From the sequence record MN563784.1: a stretch of 64,000 nucleotides of DNA; one strand, given 5' to 3'. The notes below the pieces were generated by a model. It was not told where the DNA came from. It was given only the letters and a program-made list of their open reading frames with translations, and did not search any database. Made by a program: the position numbers and the translations under genes. This document shows, one piece after another, positions 47,302 to 61,836 of the stretch; the first letter of the stretch is position 1, and each line of letters opens with the position of its first letter.

Positions 47302-47327
47302 ATAAAGGGCTCTTCGGAGCCCTTTAT
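47302..47327 (+). terminator. intrinsic terminator
   Basis: 11-bp stem, TTCG loop, T tract. Confidence 0.85.
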
Positions 47328-47354
47328 TTTTTCTTTATTTGGCAGGAATATAAA

Positions 47355-48140
47355 ATGCATCGTCGAACTATGTACAGATTTAGCTTATCATATTCCAATA
47401 AACTTATTAATAATAACCCACTTGGTTTTACAGTCGAGAGTTATCTTGAAAGCTGGTTTGACAAACTCAAGTGTCGATTAACTAAAGGTTATACCAAAAG
47501 CCATGCTATTCATTTTCGTGGAAGTTGGAAATACTTTGAATTAGATCAATATAAGAACAATGCTTTCTTCAATCAATATCACATGGTGATGCAGTCACTA
47601 GAAGATCTAGAAAGAAAGATTAGTGGAGTGATTGGGTTAAGTATCAAAATCACTAAACCAGAACGACATTTATTTCATGTTCTATTTAACCATGAAAAGA
47701 TTATTCTATCCCCTAATGGCATTATCTTTGATGTACGTGTTCCAAAACACACCGTGATAGCTAATCCTGATGTTATGGGATATCGTAATTGCAATGTAGA
47801 TAAACTGACGGTATTTGGCGAGCGCTCTAAAGTTAACTATGTGGTTAAACAAGTACGTTATGCCTTAAAGCAGAAAGGGGTGACAACTGTTGCCAATAGT
47901 TCAATGACTCGTTTTTTATATGACCTATTTCATCCAAAATACAGAGACAATCAAATTTATAACTACGGCATGACTATGTCTGATGTTTATGTAATGGCCG
48001 TATTCAAAAATGGGTATACGGAAATCTATGGTAAAGATGTAGGTGAAATATTTGAAAGTCATACTCTAGATTTTCTAGAACGTGAATACATGATCTGTGG
48101 ACAATATTTTCCTAAGCTATCCAGAGGGATGCTAGTATGA
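47355..48140 (+). CDS. hypothetical protein, tandem paralog of 46426
   Basis: AGGA RBS before ATG 47355; 47280 start crosses the terminator. Confidence 0.8.
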   Translation: MHRRTMYRFSLSYSNKLINNNPLGFTVESYLESWFDKLKCRLTKGYTKSHAIHFRGSWKYFELDQYKNNAFFNQYHMVMQSLEDLERKISGVIGLSIKITKPERHLFHVLFNHEKIILSPNGIIFDVRVPKHTVIANPDVMGYRNCNVDKLTVFGERSKVNYVVKQVRYALKQKGVTTVANSSMTRFLYDLFHPKYRDNQIYNYGMTMSDVYVMAVFKNGYTEIYGKDVGEIFESHTLDFLEREYMICGQYFPKLSRGMLV

Positions 48141-49663
48141 TTATAGAAACCTTATTGCAATATTACGCCATGTTCATCGATATCTCTCAGAAGAATATGG
48201 TTATGGGTGGAGCTATCGGAATGGCAATTGGTGGTTTATTCTGGACCACTCTAAGAGGCTTACCAAGTAAACTAGCTAGGTTCGCATTAAATCAGTTTAC
48301 AGTTAGTCTACATATTACCAACATGGGTAATGGGCTGAACGAGAAGAACTTTGATTGTTTCATGGAATGGTATATTAAGCAGCCATTAGCTGGATTTAAT
48401 CGACGTTTTTCAACTAATGTTGATGAGCAAAGTTATAGTGCAACTAAACAGAAAATTGGTGTTGGTTTTGGCTTACATTTCTTTCTGTTTAAAGGTAGGT
48501 TATTCTGGTTTGTAAAAGCACGCCGGGATAGTCAAAATGCCAGTCGAGATCAAATGGATATTACTATCCGTGGATTATCTAGGAGTAGTAAACTAATTAT
48601 TGATTTAGTAGATGCTTACCATTGGCGCCCAAATGAAAGGGGTCTGACTATTTCACATTGGGATGGTAACCGTTGGGGCAATGAGATTGAAGTTACTAAA
48701 CGCGATATCAACACGGTGATTTTGCGTAAAGAGATCAAAGAAGAATTCCTTAATAAGATTGAAGAATTCTATTCTGATCGGAAATGGTACGATGATCGTG
48801 GACTACCCTATAAATTCACTTGTGTTCTAACAGGTCCTCCTGGTACTGGTAAAACCTCAATCAGTAAAGCGATTGCCTCACATTTTAATAAAAATGTTAG
48901 TGCACTGTCATTAGCCTCTATGACCAATGATAGTCTTAGGCGGGCATTTACTACACTACCTAAAGGTAATATTCTTCTAATTGAAGATTTCGATGATACC
49001 CCGGCAGTTAAAGATCGTGTTTTAAATGATCCTGTAAAACTAGATAAAGAGATAAAGGAATTAGAGAGGAAATATTCTTTTATTGATTTAATTGAAAAAT
49101 ATCCGTCTGCATGGGTTGATCTTAAAGATGACTATGAAGGATACTCTGTAGTTGGGTTTAATGACACCATCTATATCTTTGATGAAAATAGCGATGATCA
49201 AGGTTTTGGGATAAGTGCTTATGCTATGGCTGAACTGGGTGTTTCAAAATGGGCCGATGAAAAAGATCCATTATTTACCACAATTCGCCGATGGTGGAAA
49301 TTAAAGAAGTGCATGAAGAATGGAATCACGTATGAACAACCAGCTAGCGGATTAACTTTGTCAGCTCTATTAAATGGGCTAGATGGCATTGTTCCACTAG
49401 ATGAGACTATGACCATTCTAACTACAAACCATCCTGAGAATATTGATAAAGCACTTCTAAGGAAAGGTCGCGTTGATTACATGGTGGAGATTCCATATCT
49501 ACGAGATCAAGAAGTTAGGGAGTATATTAAACTAATGTTCCCTGACTTCGATATTCCTGAAGATATCAGATTTAAAGATCAGCCAGGGTGTGATGTAATG
49601 GCGGCTTTTTCAAATAACCGTTATGACCCTAATGCTTTTATCAATAGTCTATTGAAATATTAA
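48137..49663 (+). CDS. membrane-anchored BCS1-like AAA+ ATPase
   Basis: N-terminal hydrophobic helix, BCS1_N-like region, WYDDRGLPYK, GPPGTGKTS, LLIEDFD, LTLSALLNGLDG, TTNH, ALLRKGRVD. Confidence 0.85.
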   Translation: MIIETLLQYYAMFIDISQKNMVMGGAIGMAIGGLFWTTLRGLPSKLARFALNQFTVSLHITNMGNGLNEKNFDCFMEWYIKQPLAGFNRRFSTNVDEQSYSATKQKIGVGFGLHFFLFKGRLFWFVKARRDSQNASRDQMDITIRGLSRSSKLIIDLVDAYHWRPNERGLTISHWDGNRWGNEIEVTKRDINTVILRKEIKEEFLNKIEEFYSDRKWYDDRGLPYKFTCVLTGPPGTGKTSISKAIASHFNKNVSALSLASMTNDSLRRAFTTLPKGNILLIEDFDDTPAVKDRVLNDPVKLDKEIKELERKYSFIDLIEKYPSAWVDLKDDYEGYSVVGFNDTIYIFDENSDDQGFGISAYAMAELGVSKWADEKDPLFTTIRRWWKLKKCMKNGITYEQPASGLTLSALLNGLDGIVPLDETMTILTTNHPENIDKALLRKGRVDYMVEIPYLRDQEVREYIKLMFPDFDIPEDIRFKDQPGCDVMAAFSNNRYDPNAFINSLLKY

Positions 49664-49686
49664 TATACTAAAAAGGAATCTGTAAA

Positions 49687-49875
49687 ATGAGTCTACTCAA
49701 CATTCTAAATACCGTTGCGGCTGCTAATGGTAGGGAAGTAGATGATTTTAATATCACCTATTTAAACGATACGGATGTGTCATCTAGTTATACCTCATTT
49801 CGATATCGGTATGTTGATGAGGATCGTATTGCACATATTTTCATTGTTTCTGAAAAAATCGAACAGGTTCGCTAA
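49687..49875 (+). CDS. hypothetical protein
   Basis: AAGGA RBS. Confidence 0.65.
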   Translation: MSLLNILNTVAAANGREVDDFNITYLNDTDVSSSYTSFRYRYVDEDRIAHIFIVSEKIEQVR

Positions 49876-50023
49876 TTTGTATTGTTGGCAAAACTAACTG
49901 GTTACAATGTAACTGTAAATACATGTATTTAATTTTGAAAACATACTGGAGTTATTGATGTATTGAGTTGAAACTCAATAATAACTCCTACTTTAATTTA
50001 AAAAATACAAAAGGAATATTTCC

Positions 50024-50677
50024 ATGGCGTCAATCATTAGTCTACCTTTTATCAAACTAGTAATCAGCCGTAATAATAATTACACTGTTAACCATCAGTC
50101 AGGTGCTGATAATGTACCTCATCTATGTGTTAAAGTAAAACATTCTAACGGTTATGCCTGGTTCGGTATTATCATTGTTGATTATGAAAAACGTACCAGT
50201 GGTTGGACTGAAGAAGAATTCAATGCAGTTGTAACTCGTTTCCATGAAGCAATGAATTCTCAATGTGATATCCAACGATTAGAAACAGACATTAACCGAC
50301 TAATGGATTCCATCCAAGATGTTGTTACTGGTCGGAAACGACCAACCCTATTCGGCGGTGATAGTAATGACTTCATTCAAATGCATCTTCAAAATAATAT
50401 CCAACTTGATATTTATCGGAATGAAATTAACGAAGATACTCTAACCTATGGTGGGTATCGTGGTAAAGTAAGTCTTCGCCATGGTTATGATGAATACAGC
50501 TTCTTCCTGTATCATCGTGGTATTATTCTAAACCATTACATCGATGCAGAGATTGCTAAAGAGCTAATTGAAGATGCTCTTAATAAGACTTTCCCGGAGA
50601 TTACTTATCTACCGCGAGCCACTGTCGAACCTACAGCAGTGGAACGCACTCGTAATAGACATCTGGATAAAAGTTAA
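50024..50677 (+). CDS. hypothetical protein
   Basis: AAGGA RBS. Confidence 0.8.
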   Translation: MASIISLPFIKLVISRNNNYTVNHQSGADNVPHLCVKVKHSNGYAWFGIIIVDYEKRTSGWTEEEFNAVVTRFHEAMNSQCDIQRLETDINRLMDSIQDVVTGRKRPTLFGGDSNDFIQMHLQNNIQLDIYRNEINEDTLTYGGYRGKVSLRHGYDEYSFFLYHRGIILNHYIDAEIAKELIEDALNKTFPEITYLPRATVEPTAVERTRNRHLDKS

Positions 50678-50678
50678 A

Positions 50679-51092
50679 ATGACTAGTCAACTTATCGTAG
50701 TTGATTTACAAAACCCTAGAAATAAACATATATACAGTGAATTAACTCATGAACACCCTAGAACAATAACATCACATCTAGTTGAAGAATTAGATGATTT
50801 TGATGTTCATCAATATTCATACCAAGCGGAGTATAAATCTGGGATTGATCTTAGATTAATATTCTTTTGGGATGGACCATACACTGAACCAAGAGAAGAA
50901 GGTTACGAACCAACTGATCTAGAGAAAAGGTGTGTGAAGTTGTGTAGGCAATATGAGGCTGCGATTAACGGGCAATTATCTGTAGTTGATCACTCTCGGT
51001 TCCGGACGGTGTGTACCTTCAGATCAGATAATAGTTTACCAACAACTTTAGACTGGATTCATAAAGAACCCCCATCTAAAGAGGTTGTGTAA
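50679..51092 (+). CDS. hypothetical protein
   Basis: ATG at 50679 directly after previous stop preferred to 50568. Confidence 0.7.
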   Translation: MTSQLIVVDLQNPRNKHIYSELTHEHPRTITSHLVEELDDFDVHQYSYQAEYKSGIDLRLIFFWDGPYTEPREEGYEPTDLEKRCVKLCRQYEAAINGQLSVVDHSRFRTVCTFRSDNSLPTTLDWIHKEPPSKEVV

Positions 51093-51121
51093 AAAATAGT
51101 AAAAGAAATACACTATTCTAT

Positions 51122-51210
51122 GTAGTTCCTTTACGATTGCTCTTTTATCTTAGTTTCAGTTTTGCTGAAGAAGTACCAATGAGATACCCTCCCCTGATCG
51201 GGGAGGGTTT
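51122..51210 (+). ncRNA. candidate short late RNA
   Basis: TATGTAG at 51119, no ORF, terminator about 51187-51207. Confidence 0.35.
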
Positions 51211-51233
51211 TTGACATCTAAGAGGAAAATATA

Positions 51234-51614
51234 ATGTGCAAACAACATCGTGTAGTATCTATGAAAGTTACATGCACGCAAGCTCGCTATCCGATCGGTC
51301 TGTGCGATCTCGGATTTGATAATGCTGCTGATGCTCGGCAATATCTACTAGATGTCGTCGAGTACAATATGGATCGTCTCCACCCACAACATGCTAATAC
51401 ATTCCAGCTACAAAATCTACAAGACGGGTTCGTAGTATCCTACGATATCGAAAAAGATGGATCCGTTTATCTTCGGTTAACACTGGCGGCTGTAGCTTAT
51501 CAATCAATCGATCTTGAGTTGGGGGTTACCGTTAAAGAAAATGAAGGGATCAGTGTTGTAATCAAAAATTGGATCAATGGTGATTATACTGCGGGGAACA
51601 AATACTTGCAGTAA
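51234..51614 (+). CDS. hypothetical protein
   Basis: GAGGA RBS. Confidence 0.8.
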   Translation: MCKQHRVVSMKVTCTQARYPIGLCDLGFDNAADARQYLLDVVEYNMDRLHPQHANTFQLQNLQDGFVVSYDIEKDGSVYLRLTLAAVAYQSIDLELGVTVKENEGISVVIKNWINGDYTAGNKYLQ

Positions 51615-51622
51615 TACCATAT

Positions 51623-51742
51623 GTAAAGAATACCCAAATCGGGATCTCCCGGACTATCTCCCTTCAGCGTTCCCGTCCGCAAATGAAGGTGCCGCCGAGA
51701 TCCCACCTATTGATAATGCCCTCCCTTCGGGGAGGGCTTTAT
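51623..51742 (+). ncRNA. candidate GC-rich structured late ncRNA
   Basis: TATGTA at 51620; gggatctc/gagatccc and ccttca/tgaagg helices; terminator 51718-37. Confidence 0.6.
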
Positions 51743-51780
51743 TTCGCTTAAGCCTATTTATTTTATTATAAGGGGTGAAA

Positions 51781-52512
51781 ATGACATATATCGTAAATGA
51801 TGGTAAAGTCATGATTGCAGACTGCCTATTAATTGAGCGGAATAATGCAACTGATAGCATTGGGCGACTTCCAGTATTAGATAACGGTTATATTGATCTA
51901 ACTGCTAAAGCTGAAGGTGTAGATGTATATTACAATGATTGCCACAAGATAATTTTTCATCCGACTGTTACTTGGCAAGGCAAACGTGTTAAAACTATGG
52001 CTTTTGCTGGAACTATAGATAATGTTTATGATCTATTGAATGCCCTTACCGCAGGTGTTGATTTAGCTGATTGGTTTAAAGTTGAAGTAAATATCTTGCC
52101 AGTCATAGAACGCAGGTTGTTTAATGGTAATACTTCTATGATGTTCACTATGGAGAATGGTGACATATATACAGTTATTCTTAAAGACATGGGTATCAAC
52201 ATCACCAAGAAAGATTGGGCTCATTTGGGTAGTGGTGTAGATGCAGTTAATAGTGTACTTGAGTTTATCCCTAATTGTAATGATAATGGATCAACCAAAC
52301 TAACTGCACTTGAAGCATTTGCTATTGCATGTGCACATACTACTACTGTAAGTCGTAAATTTGATTATTACATCCATGCTACAGGTGAGTACAAGCAAAA
52401 TCAAGAACTATCAACTAAACAACTAAAATGGATACTAGCGCGCATTCAAAAGCGGATGGATCTTACCCGCATTTTCAATGACCGCGAATATGCCAATAAC
52501 ATATGGGGTTGA
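51781..52512 (+). CDS. Ntn-hydrolase / proteasome-beta (HslV-like) fold protein
   Basis: M-TYIVNDGKVMIAD (Thr1), AFAG, LGSG, EAFAIA; AAGGGG RBS before ATG 51781. Confidence 0.7.
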   Translation: MTYIVNDGKVMIADCLLIERNNATDSIGRLPVLDNGYIDLTAKAEGVDVYYNDCHKIIFHPTVTWQGKRVKTMAFAGTIDNVYDLLNALTAGVDLADWFKVEVNILPVIERRLFNGNTSMMFTMENGDIYTVILKDMGINITKKDWAHLGSGVDAVNSVLEFIPNCNDNGSTKLTALEAFAIACAHTTTVSRKFDYYIHATGEYKQNQELSTKQLKWILARIQKRMDLTRIFNDREYANNIWG

Positions 52513-52517
52513 TTTGT

Positions 52518-53033
52518 ATGAGTAATTCTAATATGGATATGCTATATTACACTAATGTAAATTGGGAGCAATATTTTCATCATGTGAAACAACGTGCAGA
52601 TGATACTGTTAAAGTAATGTATAAACCTGAATATGAAGATCTTATTGATGAAGCATGTAGGCCATTAATTAAATGGTTTAATCAATTTACCAATGTTGCA
52701 ACTATTTATTGCTGTTCAGGCCATGTTGATGAAGAAACTGGTGGTAGCCCTGGATACATTAGTCTTTTATTTAAAGATACCAATGCAGAGAATTCTGCAA
52801 TGCGTTTATTGCGTGAAGCAATGTGTAAGGGGCGTGAGTGTAAGATCCCATTCGAAATTGAACTGGGGGCTTATTTCGGGCATCTACATGAGACCATTGA
52901 TCAGAATCACTGGGTCGCCAATCTAGTCATCCGCACCAATAGCTACAAACGTAAAAATACGTATGATCGCTATTGGCATCGTCTTTACAATATCATAACA
53001 ACATGTAATACTGAGGGTTTATACACCGTCTAA
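52518..53033 (+). CDS. TYW3-like fold hypothetical protein
   Basis: IDEACRPLIKWFN...TIYCCSGH. Confidence 0.5.
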   Translation: MSNSNMDMLYYTNVNWEQYFHHVKQRADDTVKVMYKPEYEDLIDEACRPLIKWFNQFTNVATIYCCSGHVDEETGGSPGYISLLFKDTNAENSAMRLLREAMCKGRECKIPFEIELGAYFGHLHETIDQNHWVANLVIRTNSYKRKNTYDRYWHRLYNIITTCNTEGLYTV

Positions 53034-53051
53034 AAAATCTGAGATAATTTA

Positions 53052-53201
53052 ATGAATGATATTAAAAATACATTATTAGTTAGATTAGAGAGGAAACAAA
53101 AAGCTAAGCGTATAGATAAATTACAAAGACTAGGTTTATGGTTTATTCTATTGCTATGTGTATCTAATCTATTTGTCCAATTAATAAAAGGTATATTCTA
53201 A
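53052..53201 (+). CDS. 49-aa C-terminal TM peptide (not in ORF track)
   Basis: ...RLGLWFILLLCVSNLFVQLIKGIF; stop abuts next ATG. Confidence 0.55.
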   Translation: MNDIKNTLLVRLERKQKAKRIDKLQRLGLWFILLLCVSNLFVQLIKGIF

Positions 53202-53882
53202 ATGGTAGAAAAGCTCAGTTTTGCTGATATATTTAAGATGGCTAAAGAGGAAAATGTTAAGCTTGAATTGCATTGTCTAATTGGTACTCGACCAGTTAGG
53301 GGTCTTATTAAAAGTTTAAACTTTAATTCAATCAGACCTGATATATGTGAATCTGTTAATTTATATGTAAATGTATTTTCTAAAGTAGTAGAGGCTAGAG
53401 TAGATCTATCAAGTACTACTGCTGATTATGGTTGCTGGAGAATGACGCCAGAAACTAAGAATTATGTAGATAGTAAATATAACTTACCAGAAAAAATTGA
53501 TATCACTAATCCAGATATCGTTAGGAGTAATATTAATTATTACCTCAGTTTACCTACTAAGGAACGCACTGAGTTATTTAATAAAATAAATAATCCTAAT
53601 GTCATTGAGGCAATAAACAAAGAATGGTCTAAAATGGTTGTAGAGTATTATCAATTTGAGATCGATTCGTTTATTGGATTAATTGATTTCGATCATGTCC
53701 TTATCAGTAAGTTCATGGTATTTAACTGGATGGATGATCTGTTTGAATATGCTTTAAATATCCCATTAAAACAAACCAATACAGTAAATGAAGGCACCTG
53801 TTGCTTACTGGTTCACAAAGATAAAAAGGCAACATATACCCATTTTACTGATATTAAAAATCTTATCAAAGTAAGTGTATAA
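53202..53882 (+). CDS. hypothetical protein, last gene of plus-strand block
   Basis: AAGGT RBS. Confidence 0.8.
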   Translation: MVEKLSFADIFKMAKEENVKLELHCLIGTRPVRGLIKSLNFNSIRPDICESVNLYVNVFSKVVEARVDLSSTTADYGCWRMTPETKNYVDSKYNLPEKIDITNPDIVRSNINYYLSLPTKERTELFNKINNPNVIEAINKEWSKMVVEYYQFEIDSFIGLIDFDHVLISKFMVFNWMDDLFEYALNIPLKQTNTVNEGTCCLLVHKDKKATYTHFTDIKNLIKVSV

Positions 53883-53894
53883 TTACGGCATAAA

Positions 53895-53916
53895 CCCCTC
53901 TCCGTATGGAGAGGGG
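53895..53916. terminator. terminator at the convergent strand switch
   Basis: cccctctcc/ggagagggg between convergent ORFs. Confidence 0.85.
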
Positions 53917-53942
53917 ATATGTCTTTATTTTTTTATTTAAAC

Positions 53943-54332
53943 TCACTTAGAAAAATCTTCTACTGGAATATCATCCAGCCAATCATTAAGTAGTTTAAAT
54001 TGATGAGGGTGTTGCATCTTAGTAACTTTACCATACTTAACACTAACTGCTTTACCAGTAGACACGGCAAGATCAACTAGTTTCTTTTCATATGCATTAA
54101 ACTCATCATACCACCGAGTATGAATAAGTTTTGCTAGGCGATCGTAAGCCGTCTTTCGATAATGATCTTCTTGTTCGCGACGCTGTTCGTCAAGTAGTTC
54201 TTTTTGACGTTGTTCTTGCTGACGCTTTTCTTCTTCCTTTTTCTCTTTCTCTAGTCGTTTCTTCTCAGCAAAATATGATAGAACCGGTAGTTTGAAAAGT
54301 AGGCTTAGAAGTAGTTGAAAGAATTGTTTCAT
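53943..54332 (-). CDS. late protein with hydrophobic N-terminus and charged coiled coil
   Basis: GAGG RBS before MKQFF at 54332; TATGTA at 54388-93. Confidence 0.8.
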   Translation of the reverse strand: MKQFFQLLLSLLFKLPVLSYFAEKKRLEKEKKEEEKRQQEQRQKELLDEQRREQEDHYRKTAYDRLAKLIHTRWYDEFNAYEKKLVDLAVSTGKAVSVKYGKVTKMQHPHQFKLLNDWLDDIPVEDFSK

Positions 54333-54412
54333 TAGTATTTCCTCAGTTTGATTAAATAGATAATTTACAAATGGCAATCCGCCTAGTTACATACTAGATA
54401 GCTGTAAGTATT

Positions 54413-54823
54413 TTAATCCGTTACAATGTCTGGATAACGTTCATCAATTAATGATTTTCTATATGCAAACTCACGCACCTCTGCTTCTAATTTTTCTTTA
54501 GTTGCATCTGTAGCACCGATCACAATAATTGAATCATTATTAATTGATAACTCTACGTCATTATCTTTTCCAAATACTAATTTAAAAACAGTATTTAATT
54601 CATCTAATTGATCTTGAACGGTTACTGTATCATCATGGATTGCCCTAGACGGTTCCTCTAATAGACCCTCTAGCACTTTATAAGACTTTATAAAAAGAGT
54701 ATCATTAAAATCTTCTTTTAACCATGTTAATTCAAGTGTATATAAATCAACCACTCTATTAAGATTTGAAGTAGTTATATCTGTTTTCCATTCATAACCT
54801 AGATAGTTAGTTTCATTACTCAT
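54413..54823 (-). CDS. late hypothetical protein
   Basis: AGGAG RBS; TATGTA at 54843-48. Confidence 0.85.
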   Translation of the reverse strand: MSNETNYLGYEWKTDITTSNLNRVVDLYTLELTWLKEDFNDTLFIKSYKVLEGLLEEPSRAIHDDTVTVQDQLDELNTVFKLVFGKDNDVELSINNDSIIVIGATDATKEKLEAEVREFAYRKSLIDERYPDIVTD

Positions 54824-54865
54824 TATAAACTCCTTTGATTAATACATATTAAATAATCTGGAGTA

Positions 54866-55042
54866 TTATTTCTTTGTAATGCGATAACCAACTGACCATA
54901 AATCTATACGGACGAAACCTTTTCCCTCATGTTGACCGTATAAACATACACGTAACATTCTATTACCTGGCTTCATATCAATTCGTGTTACCTCAAATTT
55001 ATTAGTAATGTATTCTTGGATGATAAATAATAGATGACTCAT
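54866..55042 (-). CDS. 58-aa hypothetical protein (not in ORF track)
   Basis: MSHLLFIIQEYITNKFEVTRID...; AGGA RBS. Confidence 0.55.
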   Translation of the reverse strand: MSHLLFIIQEYITNKFEVTRIDMKPGNRMLRVCLYGQHEGKGFVRIDLWSVGYRITKK

Positions 55043-55171
55043 TTTATATTTTCCTGATTAATGACAAACATAAGCCCCTCCATATGGAGGGGCAATATGA
55101 TTTACTGAGTCTTTCGCGTTCAATCCCATCCTAACTAATATATTTAAGAATAGTTTAAACCTCAGTAAATT

Positions 55172-55248
55172 TGGTGCCGCCACTCCGAATCGAACGGAGG
55201 ACCTACGCATTACAAGTGCGTTGCTCTACCTAGCTGAGCTATAGCGGC
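55172..55248 (-). tRNA. tRNA-Thr(UGU)
   Basis: Full cloverleaf, CT-TGT-AA loop, encoded CCA. Confidence 0.96.
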
Positions 55249-55309
55249 GGAATCTTCTACATATAGTGTATATGAAAGTATTATTTTATTTATTATAATA
55301 AATAAAGTT

Positions 55310-55350
55310 ATATTCAAACATATTTAAACAGTATATCATTAACTTGATAT
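55310..55350 (+). promoter_or_regulatory. early-type promoter inside the late block
   Basis: tattcaaacatatttaaacag-TATATCAT, same extended motif as 24748. Confidence 0.6.
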
Positions 55351-55395
55351 TACTAAAAGTAATATTTTCTATTAATTGTAAATAGGATACTAAAT

Positions 55396-55533
55396 ATGAA
55401 TATTGATCCAAAAACTCTTGGCATTATTATTAGCACCACTATTGGCACCGTAGGTGCTCTTATTCTTACGTATGGTATTGCGAGAGCAGTACGTTGGAAT
55501 AATAAACCTGATGTAAAAGATGTAGCAGAGTAA
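55396..55533 (+). CDS. 45-aa single-TM peptide, isolated plus-strand unit (not in ORF track)
   Basis: MNIDPKTLGIIISTTIGTVGALILTYGIARAVRWNNKPDVKDVAE; AGGA RBS; terminator 55544-66. Confidence 0.7.
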   Translation: MNIDPKTLGIIISTTIGTVGALILTYGIARAVRWNNKPDVKDVAE

Positions 55534-55590
55534 GATAACATAAAGCTAGCCCATTAGGGGCTAGCTCTTATATTTATTTTTTTATTTGTT

Positions 55591-56220
55591 TTAACTTAGA
55601 GTACTATAATAAATAAATTTAGTTAATTCATCTTGTTGCTCTTTGATTATATTATTTTTCGTTTGTTTAACATTAATGTAATATTCAATAAATAACCAAC
55701 GTCTATCATGTTTGGCTAAGTCTTTGAATTCAATTTTCTCAAATCGCCATGACTGTACAGTAGTCCTAATGAGATTACCGGATTTATTGATAATATACCC
55801 TTGCATGGTGTTAATTTGATCATCGATAGTAGGCGTTGGTAAAAATATCAAATAAACACCATCTGTATTTTTAGTGTGCATACTTTTTAATTTATACATC
55901 ATTGGGTTAAAGTATTCATCACTTTTATGATAATCGCTTAATTCTAACACAGCATCAATCATCATTTTAGCGCTTTCAGTAACACCAACATTTAGTAAAT
56001 AATCATTAAGCTCTTTTAATGAATTATCTGTAAGTGATGCATCTATGTGTTCTTCACTTATAGGTTCATTATAAACTAGTTTATTAATAGTTGAATTAAC
56101 AATATTTAGCCTATCGATATCATAAACTGCTAGTGTTTGTTTACCAACATTTATTTTTAAGTCTTTACCTGATTCATTGATAAAATCATTTAAATCTACT
56201 TCAGTAAAATGAAAAGCCAT
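55591..56220 (-). CDS. hypothetical protein
   Basis: AAGGTG RBS. Confidence 0.8.
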   Translation of the reverse strand: MAFHFTEVDLNDFINESGKDLKINVGKQTLAVYDIDRLNIVNSTINKLVYNEPISEEHIDASLTDNSLKELNDYLLNVGVTESAKMMIDAVLELSDYHKSDEYFNPMMYKLKSMHTKNTDGVYLIFLPTPTIDDQINTMQGYIINKSGNLIRTTVQSWRFEKIEFKDLAKHDRRWLFIEYYINVKQTKNNIIKEQQDELTKFIYYSTLS

Positions 56221-56691
56221 TTTTATACACCTTTATGTTTTCCGTAGTGTTAAATTTTATTAACACCCGGTTTCAAGTTGAGTTATGTGTAGAACTAATC
56301 TACAAATAATATTAACTCTATGTATAATTTTACTTATAAATAGACCACTCTATATAGAGGGGTATTAAGTCATATAAAGTTATTTTAGTGTGGGTCTAAA
56401 TACAAACATTACGTCTACTTCATCAGTTGGGTCGACATCATATTCTGTCCCAGTATTATCAATCGCAACCAACATTCTCACATTCCTCGGTAAAGGGCTT
56501 TATGTGATTTAGATAGGCAAGTGATAAAATACCTAAATGCACTGAGATATTCTCTGATAAATCCTTTACCTTTATTAAAATTATCACCTACATGGACCAT
56601 TCAATCACTTTTATGTAGCTTGATTTCAATCAATTAAAGGGTATAACGAATGTAATGTATTTATACACGAATATAGTTATCATAAGCTCAA

Positions 56692-56982
56692 CTACTTGGG
56701 GTAAAAGAGTGGACGGAGATCAGTCTCATGGTATTCATCTTTGATATGGGAAAAGTACTTATTGAAATTATCCACACTATACGAAGTTCTAAGCCCATTT
56801 GGCCAAATCACTAACATGTCACCAACTTCGAATGCCGTGATCATAGCCTCAAAGTCTTTTATGTTTACATGATCATTACCAAGTTTCACGAATCGACATG
56901 CACGGAAACCACATTCCCAGTCAGACGACATCCATTGACCAGCCTCAGTAATCAGCTTTGCACGAACTAATGTCTTAGCCAT
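56692..56982 (-). CDS. hypothetical protein
   Basis: Coupled to 56975 ORF. Confidence 0.75.
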   Translation of the reverse strand: MAKTLVRAKLITEAGQWMSSDWECGFRACRFVKLGNDHVNIKDFEAMITAFEVGDMLVIWPNGLRTSYSVDNFNKYFSHIKDEYHETDLRPLFYPK

Positions 56983-57160
56983 ACTTGGTACCCCAGTTTA
57001 TCGTTTTGTCGAGAAGAGCTTGACTAGGTCGTTTATTACGAATCTGATTCTTAATAGACTCATTTAGCTCTTCCATCGTTTTCCGAACTTTAACTAATCG
57101 TTCCTTTTGTTCATTTGTAGGAACACTACTAACTATATCTTGCAATGCTTTAAGTGACAT
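56975..57160 (-). CDS. hypothetical protein
   Basis: AGGG RBS. Confidence 0.7.
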   Translation of the reverse strand: MSLKALQDIVSSVPTNEQKERLVKVRKTMEELNESIKNQIRNKRPSQALLDKTINWGTKYG

Positions 57161-57291
57161 GTCTTTACCCTATTTGTATTCAGCTATAAGATTCAACTAC
57201 TGGGTACTTTTACAAGACGACATAAAGGCAGCATTAGCTGCCTTTATAGTTTACATAGTAGTGAAATATAACTAAATCTAAAACTATGAAT

Positions 57292-57367
<76 letters not shown>

Positions 57368-61682: not shown

Positions 61683-61836
61683 AAATATAAAGCCTCCCCG
61701 AAGGGAGGCGATATATCGTCATTAATGCCCAGCAAAGAGTTTTACTCTCTGGGAGCCAGTTGGAAGGGGGACTGGCTCCGATTTATTATGACTAATGTAG
61801 AAACGAGGGGGAGGGATCATTTCTACATATCATTAC
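61683..61836 (-). ncRNA. candidate late sRNA with C-rich, anti-SD-like loops
   Basis: TATGTA start 61834-39, two 9-bp hairpins with loops UGAUCCCUCCCCCUCG and CCCCCUUCCA, UUCG terminator 61692-61709, no ORF. Confidence 0.7.

Follow-up and report, generated by a model that had tools for sequence, protein, structure and literature searches.

A stretch of 166 nucleotides between two genes of a jumbo bacteriophage gives rise to a real and very abundant non-coding RNA of ~120 bases, the fold of which is conserved among related phages as a structured RNA family whose base pairs have been kept by compensatory substitution. Within the 64,000-nucleotide stretch of record MN563784.1 analysed here (hereafter the window), it lies directly upstream of an Ntn-hydrolase-like gene, has its own start site and canonical terminator in the published transcript map, and is the smallest version of an RNA that reaches several hundred nucleotides elsewhere. 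It is a conserved RNA gene of phiKZ-like jumbo phages and the most compact representative of a larger family; on the full explanation, in which it also has a gating role, we place a little under even weight.

The window belongs to the phiKZ species group of Pseudomonas aeruginosa jumbo phages. The 1.5 kb surrounding the RNA locus are 99.5-100% identical to those of PA02, KTN4, OMKO1, PA7 and others, and the locus is 99.6% identical to that of phiKZ itself, whose coordinates are obtained here by adding 211548 to the window position. The gap that holds the RNA separates PHIKZ288 from PHIKZ289, both on the + strand (Table 1). PHIKZ289 matches an HslV-family PHROG at 5e-5, the N-terminal Met-Thr of its homologues is invariant except for Met-Ser in PhiPA3, and its Atlas look-alikes carry Proteasome, CBAH or AAT families; a PDB sequence-profile search with the protein returned no matches. 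In its Shine-Dalgarno region, window position 51774 is a G (AAGGGGTG) where phiKZ has an A (AAGGAGTG), and the A is also found in all three RNA runs that contain the phage. A BCS1-like AAA+ ATPase gene (window 48137-49663) sits ~2 kb upstream of this HslV-like gene. On the other side, PHIKZ290 (window 52518-53033) yields a weak, sub-threshold match (E 0.0015) to the tRNA methyltransferase family TYW3, which recurs in only two of five homologues and was set aside. The whole block can be lost: in phage kmuB (MW057919.1) ~10 kb are absent (window ~47324-57331), including the AAA+ ATPase gene, the RNA, PHIKZ289-290 and one tRNA gene (tRNA-Thr), so the region of the RNA and PHIKZ289 is dispensable for laboratory growth.

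Folding with RNAfold returns a rod followed by an 8-bp terminator hairpin with a UUCG loop, just as the initial annotation had drawn it from the letters; its helices, loops, terminator and TATG start all fall where it had placed them. The abrupt GC enrichment that it described is likewise present, at 0.49-0.56 over 51600-51749 against ~0.37 in the flanks. The minimum free energy of -45.2 kcal/mol compares with -31.1 +/- 3.5 in 200 dinucleotide shuffles, none of which was as stable (z = -4.05). The fold matched no Rfam family: a search of the 64-kb window against Rfam 15 recovered only tRNAs elsewhere at the gathering threshold (the best local match had E >1), Rfam found nothing at the RNA locus of the related isolate KEN49, and neither ARAGORN nor RF00005 reported a tRNA or tmRNA at the locus. 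Members of the family were also inspected by eye for an alternative terminator/antiterminator pairing, and none consistent was seen; a similarity of the loop and P3 to the terminator in phiKZ and one contig is inconsistent across members and reflects the generic phiKZ terminator motif. Hairpins of that kind are reported for more than 70% of predicted terminators. A 241-nt query spanning window 51560-51800 finds ~11-13 matching places per whole phiKZ-type genome, which are probably copies of this terminator hairpin family (CCYCCC-loop-GGGRGG-TTTAT).

Table 1. Features of the RNA locus, its neighbours and related elements. Positions refer to the window unless they carry an L number, which denotes another phage sequence.
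Feature	Position	Strand	Details
PHIKZ288	51234..51614	+	upstream gene; stop codon 51612-14
Promoter P130	51600..51623	+	AAATACTT box 51600-07, TATG 51620-23; overlaps PHIKZ288 stop codon
Start site and single-stranded 5' leader, 17 nt	51624..51640	+	published TSS; nanopore adaptor abuts 51623
Rod-shaped hairpin, 64 nt	51641..51704	+	RNAfold, covariance models R1/R2, covariation counts
P1	51641-48/51697-704	+	GGGATCTC/GAGATCCC
P2, 3 bp	51650-52/51692-94	+	RNAfold
C-rich 5' internal loop	51653-60	+	ACTATCTC as DNA, ACUAUCUC as RNA; faces UG
P3	51661-66/51684-89	+	CCTTCA/TGAAGG
P4, apical stem	51667-69/51678-80	+	GCG/CGC
Apical loop	51670-77	+	TTCCCGTC as DNA, UUCCCGUC as RNA
3' internal loop UG	51690-91	+	invariant
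Tail ACCUAUU and A/U-rich linker	51705..51717	+	second 3' end at 51708/9
Intrinsic terminator T119	51718..51745	+	stem 51718-51737, 8-bp, UUCG loop, then UUUAUUU; TTS 51744; poly(A) or adaptor behind 51743-51745 in runs X15 and X6
PHIKZ289	51781..52512	+	HslV/Ntn-hydrolase-like protein, 243 aa
PHIKZ302 5'UTR RNA	~61690-61830	-	terminator ~61690-61715
Membrane-like ORF	L005:1271-1504, L006:1334-1504, L007:1286-1504		stop overlaps next start (ATGA)
Long forms	L125:2607-2992, L155:2295-2670, L150:1440-1895, L154:2060-2545		PhiPA3, PA1C, Viktualia and 201phi2-1, respectively
Further long forms			contigs L163, L169, L173, L176

Evidence for a discrete transcript comes from the map of Putzeys et al. 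2024 (microLife uqae002), whose tables were taken from the supplement of the bioRxiv version. There, promoter P130 initiates at 263172(+), the nucleotide immediately 3' of TATG (window 51624); the intrinsic terminator T119 ends transcripts at 263292 (window 51744); and the intervening transcription unit TU198, 120 nt long and with no gene inside, is called a '5'UTR-derived ncRNA candidate'. Table S7 of that study enters it as '5'UTR-derived, PHIKZ289, 120 nt, -46.6 kcal/mol' and leaves the validation column blank, so that the locus is already known, as an unvalidated candidate. Table S3 classes P130 as a 'middle promoter', which corrects the 'late' timing proposed in the initial annotation. 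T119 is shared, as PHIKZ288 transcripts (TU195, TU197) also end there, and it is not absolute, as the longest read from P130 reaches 264292, through PHIKZ289. With no mapped promoter between T119 and PHIKZ289, read-through of this terminator is the only mapped route into that gene.

These ends were re-checked in assembler contigs from public nanopore cDNA and Illumina runs, where they differ from the published positions by no more than 1 nt. Position 51623 borders directly on the nanopore strand-switch adaptor, in-vitro poly(A) tails follow 51744/51745 in nanopore cDNA contigs of run X15, and in an Illumina run the adaptor follows 51743; a raw-read run, X24, held no phage reads. Two further nanopore contigs of run X15 carry poly(A) behind 51709, a position inside the conserved tail (ACCU|AUU). 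This 51708/9 end may be a product of processing; the site resembles one for RNase E. Contig depth is 1935-2566 over 51630-51719 as against 59.7 for PHIKZ288 and 26.3 for PHIKZ289, an excess of ~40-100 times over the flanking genes that is only semi-quantitative, since it comes from assembler contigs, whose word depth is a poor measure of expression. The locus has the properties by which such candidates were defined in the published map: a mapped start with a promoter motif and an end less than 250 nt downstream within a 5'UTR, a short form that outweighs read-through (contig depth ~1900-2570 against 26, again semi-quantitative), and no ORF of at least 10 aa with a canonical Shine-Dalgarno sequence. 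It has the layout of an Hfq-type sRNA too, with its own promoter, a U-rich stretch and a terminator hairpin with a U tail, the latter (UUUAUUU) with a single A among its U residues.

A second published 5'UTR-derived candidate, the 89-nt leader of PHIKZ288 (window 51123-51212, + strand; terminator CCCTCCCC-TGAT-CGGGGAGGG), lies only ~400 nt upstream, and thus two units of promoter, short RNA and terminator stand in tandem. The initial annotation had also likened the RNA to an element at 61.7 kb, which corresponds to the northern-validated PHIKZ302 5'UTR RNA of Putzeys et al. 2024. The likeness holds for the layout of promoter, short RNA and terminator and fails for sequence and structure, of which the two have none in common: our covariance model has a single match within the 64-kb window. 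Table S7 prints the PHIKZ302 5'UTR RNA sequence as plus strand. The phiKZ coordinate offset at the PHIKZ302 element differs by ~900 nt from that at the RNA locus, from which it follows that the window phage carries indels relative to phiKZ between the two.

The RNA is preserved well beyond phiKZ. Examination of the region upstream of PHIKZ289 homologues in other genera revealed the hairpin in RVTF4, Psa21 and D6; a covariance model (R1) combined with a specific DNA pattern then added uncultivated viral contigs and PhiPA3, and the covariance model also recovered PA1C, HPP-Temi, Viktualia, 201phi2-1 and further contigs. Together with phiKZ and T2P, the family comprises 16 distinct members, each genome holding one copy in the same place and each copy preceded by the promoter box AAATACTT...GTAAT...TATG. 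A loose DNA pattern gave ~110 chance matches, and of the four metagenome matches to the tight one two were likewise due to chance. A scan of 185,000 bacterial genomes with the pattern yielded no true match, the sole hit lying inside a dehydrogenase-like ORF and being rejected by the covariance model. A second model, R2, matched nothing in EL, OBP, SPN3US, Ea35-70 or Lu11, an absence that depends on the search filters.

Selection on the fold is evident across these sequences; the initial annotation had proposed covariation as a check. Of the two outcomes that it had named as refuting, the lack of a discrete transcript and the lack of structural conservation, neither was obtained. Over the 16 distinct sequences, pairing is intact in 93.0% of helix cells, compared with 34-48% when the partners are slid; 17 of the 21 pairs have changed on both sides, and none of 500 shuffles reached the observed values. 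When 13 members were aligned by hand on their structure and verified against the DNA, 270 of 275 helix positions proved to be paired, with 10, 5, 8 and 7 different strand pairs for P1, P2, P3 and P4, respectively. While the four helices covary over at least nine phage lineages, the loops and tail do not change: AUCUC of the 5' internal loop (N-N-Y-AUCUC), CCCGUC of the apical loop (U-N-CCCGUC) and the opposing UG are fixed in phages of P. aeruginosa, P. syringae and P. chlororaphis, and the tail ACCUAUU is invariant in all short-form members. Such invariant loops point to a contact surface for a conserved partner. The same constraint is visible over a shorter distance within Phikzvirus, between phiKZ and the divergent T2P group, where leader, hairpin and tail are 96.6% identical as against 82% for PHIKZ288, 79% for PHIKZ289 and 73% for the linker and terminator; the terminator stem of T2P shows compensatory changes of its own.

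The family comes in two sizes. In the short form (phiKZ, T2P, RVTF4, Psa21-like and D6-like phages) the terminator begins ~13 nt after the hairpin. The long form of PhiPA3, PA1C/HPP-Temi, Viktualia, 201phi2-1 and several contigs has the same promoter and the same hairpin as its 5' domain, followed by ~270-330 nt of further conserved, GC-rich sequence full of stop codons, so that the RNA measures ~380-470 nt and the hairpin stands more than 300 nt from the terminator. Blocks common to the long forms include CUUUCGGURU, AACCGAAGC, GAAGUUA, AGUGGCG and CUGGCCAG. A structure sketch of nine long forms with RNAalifold predicts 50 pairs, of which 24 have compensatory changes, and the fold of the PhiPA3 RNA has z = -3.0; none of the long forms matches Rfam at E <=1, and together they would appear to represent a large structured RNA, not described before, of Pseudomonas chimalliviruses. 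A further case is offered by KEN49 (PP456877.1), an isolate of the phiKZ species itself, in which a structured non-coding insertion of ~290 nt (L003:1645-1945) separates hairpin and terminator exactly. By BLAST the insertion has no match in any other phage record, and block by block it resembles a divergent long-form 3' domain; its record annotates two small CDS over it. As the long forms add a 3' domain to the same hairpin, the phiKZ RNA is the minimal form, and the hairpin is what all members retain.

In all members, promoter, RNA and terminator are succeeded directly by the ribosome-binding site of the next ORF, leaving no space for another promoter. That ORF is PHIKZ289-like in phiKZ, T2P, PhiPA3 and PA1C/HPP-Temi. 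In RVTF4, Psa21 and D6 the terminator is followed first by a hydrophobic, membrane-like ORF of 56-77 aa and then by the PHIKZ289 homologue, and in Viktualia three small ORFs intervene. The same kind of membrane-like ORF follows the RNA in contig L092 (~2018-2203, - strand); phiKZ is without it. In L092, from an uncultivated phage of 310 kb, the RNA is not followed by any PHIKZ289 homologue, and none was detected in 201phi2-1. Strict linkage to PHIKZ289 is thus broken in the former and probably in the latter, and, the RNA being kept in both, the association is not absolute. Upstream neighbours are not homologous between genera, which disposes of a conserved protein partner encoded on that side.

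How might such an RNA work? The phage's own RNA polymerase starts at the middle-class promoter at window 51624 and transcribes the 17-nt leader, the 64-nt hairpin and the ACCUAUU tail. Nearly all transcription then stops at the terminator at 51744, generating the very abundant ~120-nt RNA and the shorter species ending at 51708/9, and a small fraction of transcripts continues into PHIKZ289-290. We tentatively favour, at somewhat less than even confidence, the idea that the hairpin, close to the promoter, serves as a recognition element within the nascent transcript and sets read-through into the Ntn-hydrolase operon. With or without a factor, it would act on the polymerase during transcription, through factor-dependent attenuation or through processive antitermination at a distance in the manner of nut and put sites, and the abundant short RNA would be the terminated product. 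This preference rests on the conserved order of promoter, RNA, terminator and promoterless ORF, on the >300 nt between hairpin and terminator in long forms, and on the lack, on inspection, of an alternative pairing with the terminator; the recorded read-through from P130 into PHIKZ289 (published TU table) is a further point in its favour. Against it stand the single copy per genome, unlike nut or put sites, and downstream genes that do not resemble RNA-binding autoregulators. Furthermore, short transcripts in ~100:1 excess are what would be expected if the short RNA itself were the purpose of transcription, which counts against gating. No mutually exclusive terminator/antiterminator pairing was seen by eye, the link to PHIKZ289 is incomplete and the region has been lost in kmuB, all of which weigh on the same side. 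A more specific version of the idea, which we consider possible though rather doubtful, would have the hairpin as the universally retained core of a hitherto undescribed structured RNA family of Pseudomonas nucleus-forming jumbo phages, ranging from ~120 nt (phiKZ-type) to 380-470 nt (PhiPA3-, PA1C-, 201phi2-1- and Viktualia-type, and KEN49), its loops docking a conserved partner, e.g. the phage's own non-virion RNA polymerase, so that the RNA would serve in antitermination or regulation.

Gating and a separate role of the released RNA in trans are not mutually exclusive, and the latter is nearly as likely. It may be that the 120-nt or ~85-nt RNA is a stand-alone trans-acting sRNA, or a component of a ribonucleoprotein, and that any gating of PHIKZ289 is incidental; this we regard as a serious contender, if one that falls well short of even probability. 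To a similar degree it is conceivable that the C-rich loops or the 5' leader bind a conserved host or phage partner, candidates being G-rich or Shine-Dalgarno-like RNA, Hfq, RNase E or the ribosome. The ~100-fold excess of the short form (from semi-quantitative contig depth) is what such an RNA would be expected to show, as is its classical sRNA build of own promoter, stem-loop, U-rich linker and terminator hairpin with U tail. Its loops are invariant across phages of three Pseudomonas species, it is kept where a PHIKZ289 homologue does not follow or is not detected, and the 380-470 nt long forms are more like scaffold RNAs than leaders. Target sites speak less favourably: sites complementary to the two loops in five phage genomes are only the antisense of the RNA genes themselves, and loop-complementary sites are not enriched in the 64-kb window. 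That the next ORF always follows without a promoter of its own is also more typical of leaders.

A humbler reading is that the RNA is a functionless by-product, arising because the terminator of the preceding operon happens to have a promoter in front of it, with a GC-rich hairpin that stabilises or insulates transcripts. T119 does serve PHIKZ288 as well, phiKZ has 17 such short 5'UTR transcripts, and the region is dispensable in kmuB; we nonetheless consider it improbable because the loops are invariant, and a mere stabiliser would not keep loop sequences of eight and six bases unchanged across genera while four helices covary, nor would it explain an RNA 96.6% identical between phiKZ and T2P where its flanks are 73-82%. 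Less probable still is a role as structural mimic or decoy, directed against a host enzyme or defence system and imitating either a tRNA-like minihelix or the 3' region of 16S rRNA. P1 and P2 together make 11-14 bp before an ACC that follows P1 in all short forms, and the loops contain CCCGUC and an anti-SD-like CUCC (AUC-CUCC), sequences that we assume to resemble the 16S rRNA 3' region. Several points speak against this: neither ARAGORN nor the Rfam tRNA models give a match, processing is seen to leave a 3' end of ACCU(A) rather than ACC or ACCA, and chance alone should produce six-base identities with an rRNA of 1.5 kb. Finally, the notion that a small protein is encoded here can be dismissed: ORFs of 40-68 aa do overlap the RNA, and one is annotated as KEN49_CDS0069, but no reading frame is conserved among homologues (the initial annotation had judged these ORFs spurious), indels do not come in threes, substitutions are compensatory for RNA pairing, and Putzeys et al. 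2024 had screened their candidates for ORFs of at least 10 aa with a canonical Shine-Dalgarno sequence. Several GenBank records of phiKZ-type phages annotate a hypothetical protein over the RNA (e.g. KEN49_CDS0069 at L003:1518-1700), which is probably an annotation artefact.

Nucleus-forming jumbo phages use their own polymerases, and termination, read-through and RNA-based regulation are almost undescribed in this setting. Strong purifying selection, a fold proven by covariation and loops invariant across genera now allow this RNA to be ranked as a priority among the many unvalidated entries of a supplementary table. Nature has already performed a domain-deletion experiment in the shape of the short and long forms, and the partner could be sought directly through mutants of the loops, compensatory changes in the helices and the deletion that kmuB carries naturally. 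The family also merits an Rfam entry, which would stop spurious CDS calls over the RNA.

Among known systems, the closest relatives in design are the other 5'UTR-derived candidates of phiKZ, 17 of which, this RNA included, are listed in Table S7 of Putzeys et al. 2024 and share the order of promoter, short structured RNA, phiKZ-type terminator and gene. Several have been validated by northern blot (e.g. those upstream of PHIKZ221, PHIKZ234, PHIKZ297 and PHIKZ302), unlike the entry for this RNA, with which they have no sequence or structure in common given the one model match in the window; for such candidates that study reports only within-genus conservation. The sRNA005 of 201phi2-1, known in phiKZ as the sRNA upstream of gp182 (Microb Biotechnol 2024, e70037), is likewise 5'UTR-derived and conserved in position and fold in 201phi2-1, phiKZ, EL and PhiPA3, but it is a different RNA at a different locus (upstream of gp182/gp277), and the RNA described here was not found in EL. 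The nut/boxB sites of lambda and put sites of HK022 are also promoter-proximal structured RNAs with conserved loops that lie upstream of terminators and act on polymerase at a distance. The likeness is one of layout only, as there is no sequence similarity, and the phage RNA is single copy, is made by a non-virion multisubunit phage polymerase and, in the data at hand, is subject to near-complete termination at the next terminator. Riboswitch and attenuator leaders similarly place a conserved structured 5'UTR element before an intrinsic terminator and an ORF, and their terminated leader accumulates; they differ in that here no antiterminator pairing is seen, no Rfam family matches, and the long-form hairpin lies more than 300 nt from the terminator. 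The long forms are of the same general kind as ROOL and GOLLD, being 380-470 nt long, GC-rich, non-coding, phage-borne and equipped with their own promoter and terminator, although they match nothing in Rfam and the phiKZ form amounts to the 5' hairpin domain only. Further literature searches found nothing on this RNA. Relative to both Putzeys et al. 2024 and the 201phi2-1 study, the cross-genus family, its covariation, its invariant loops and its long form are new.
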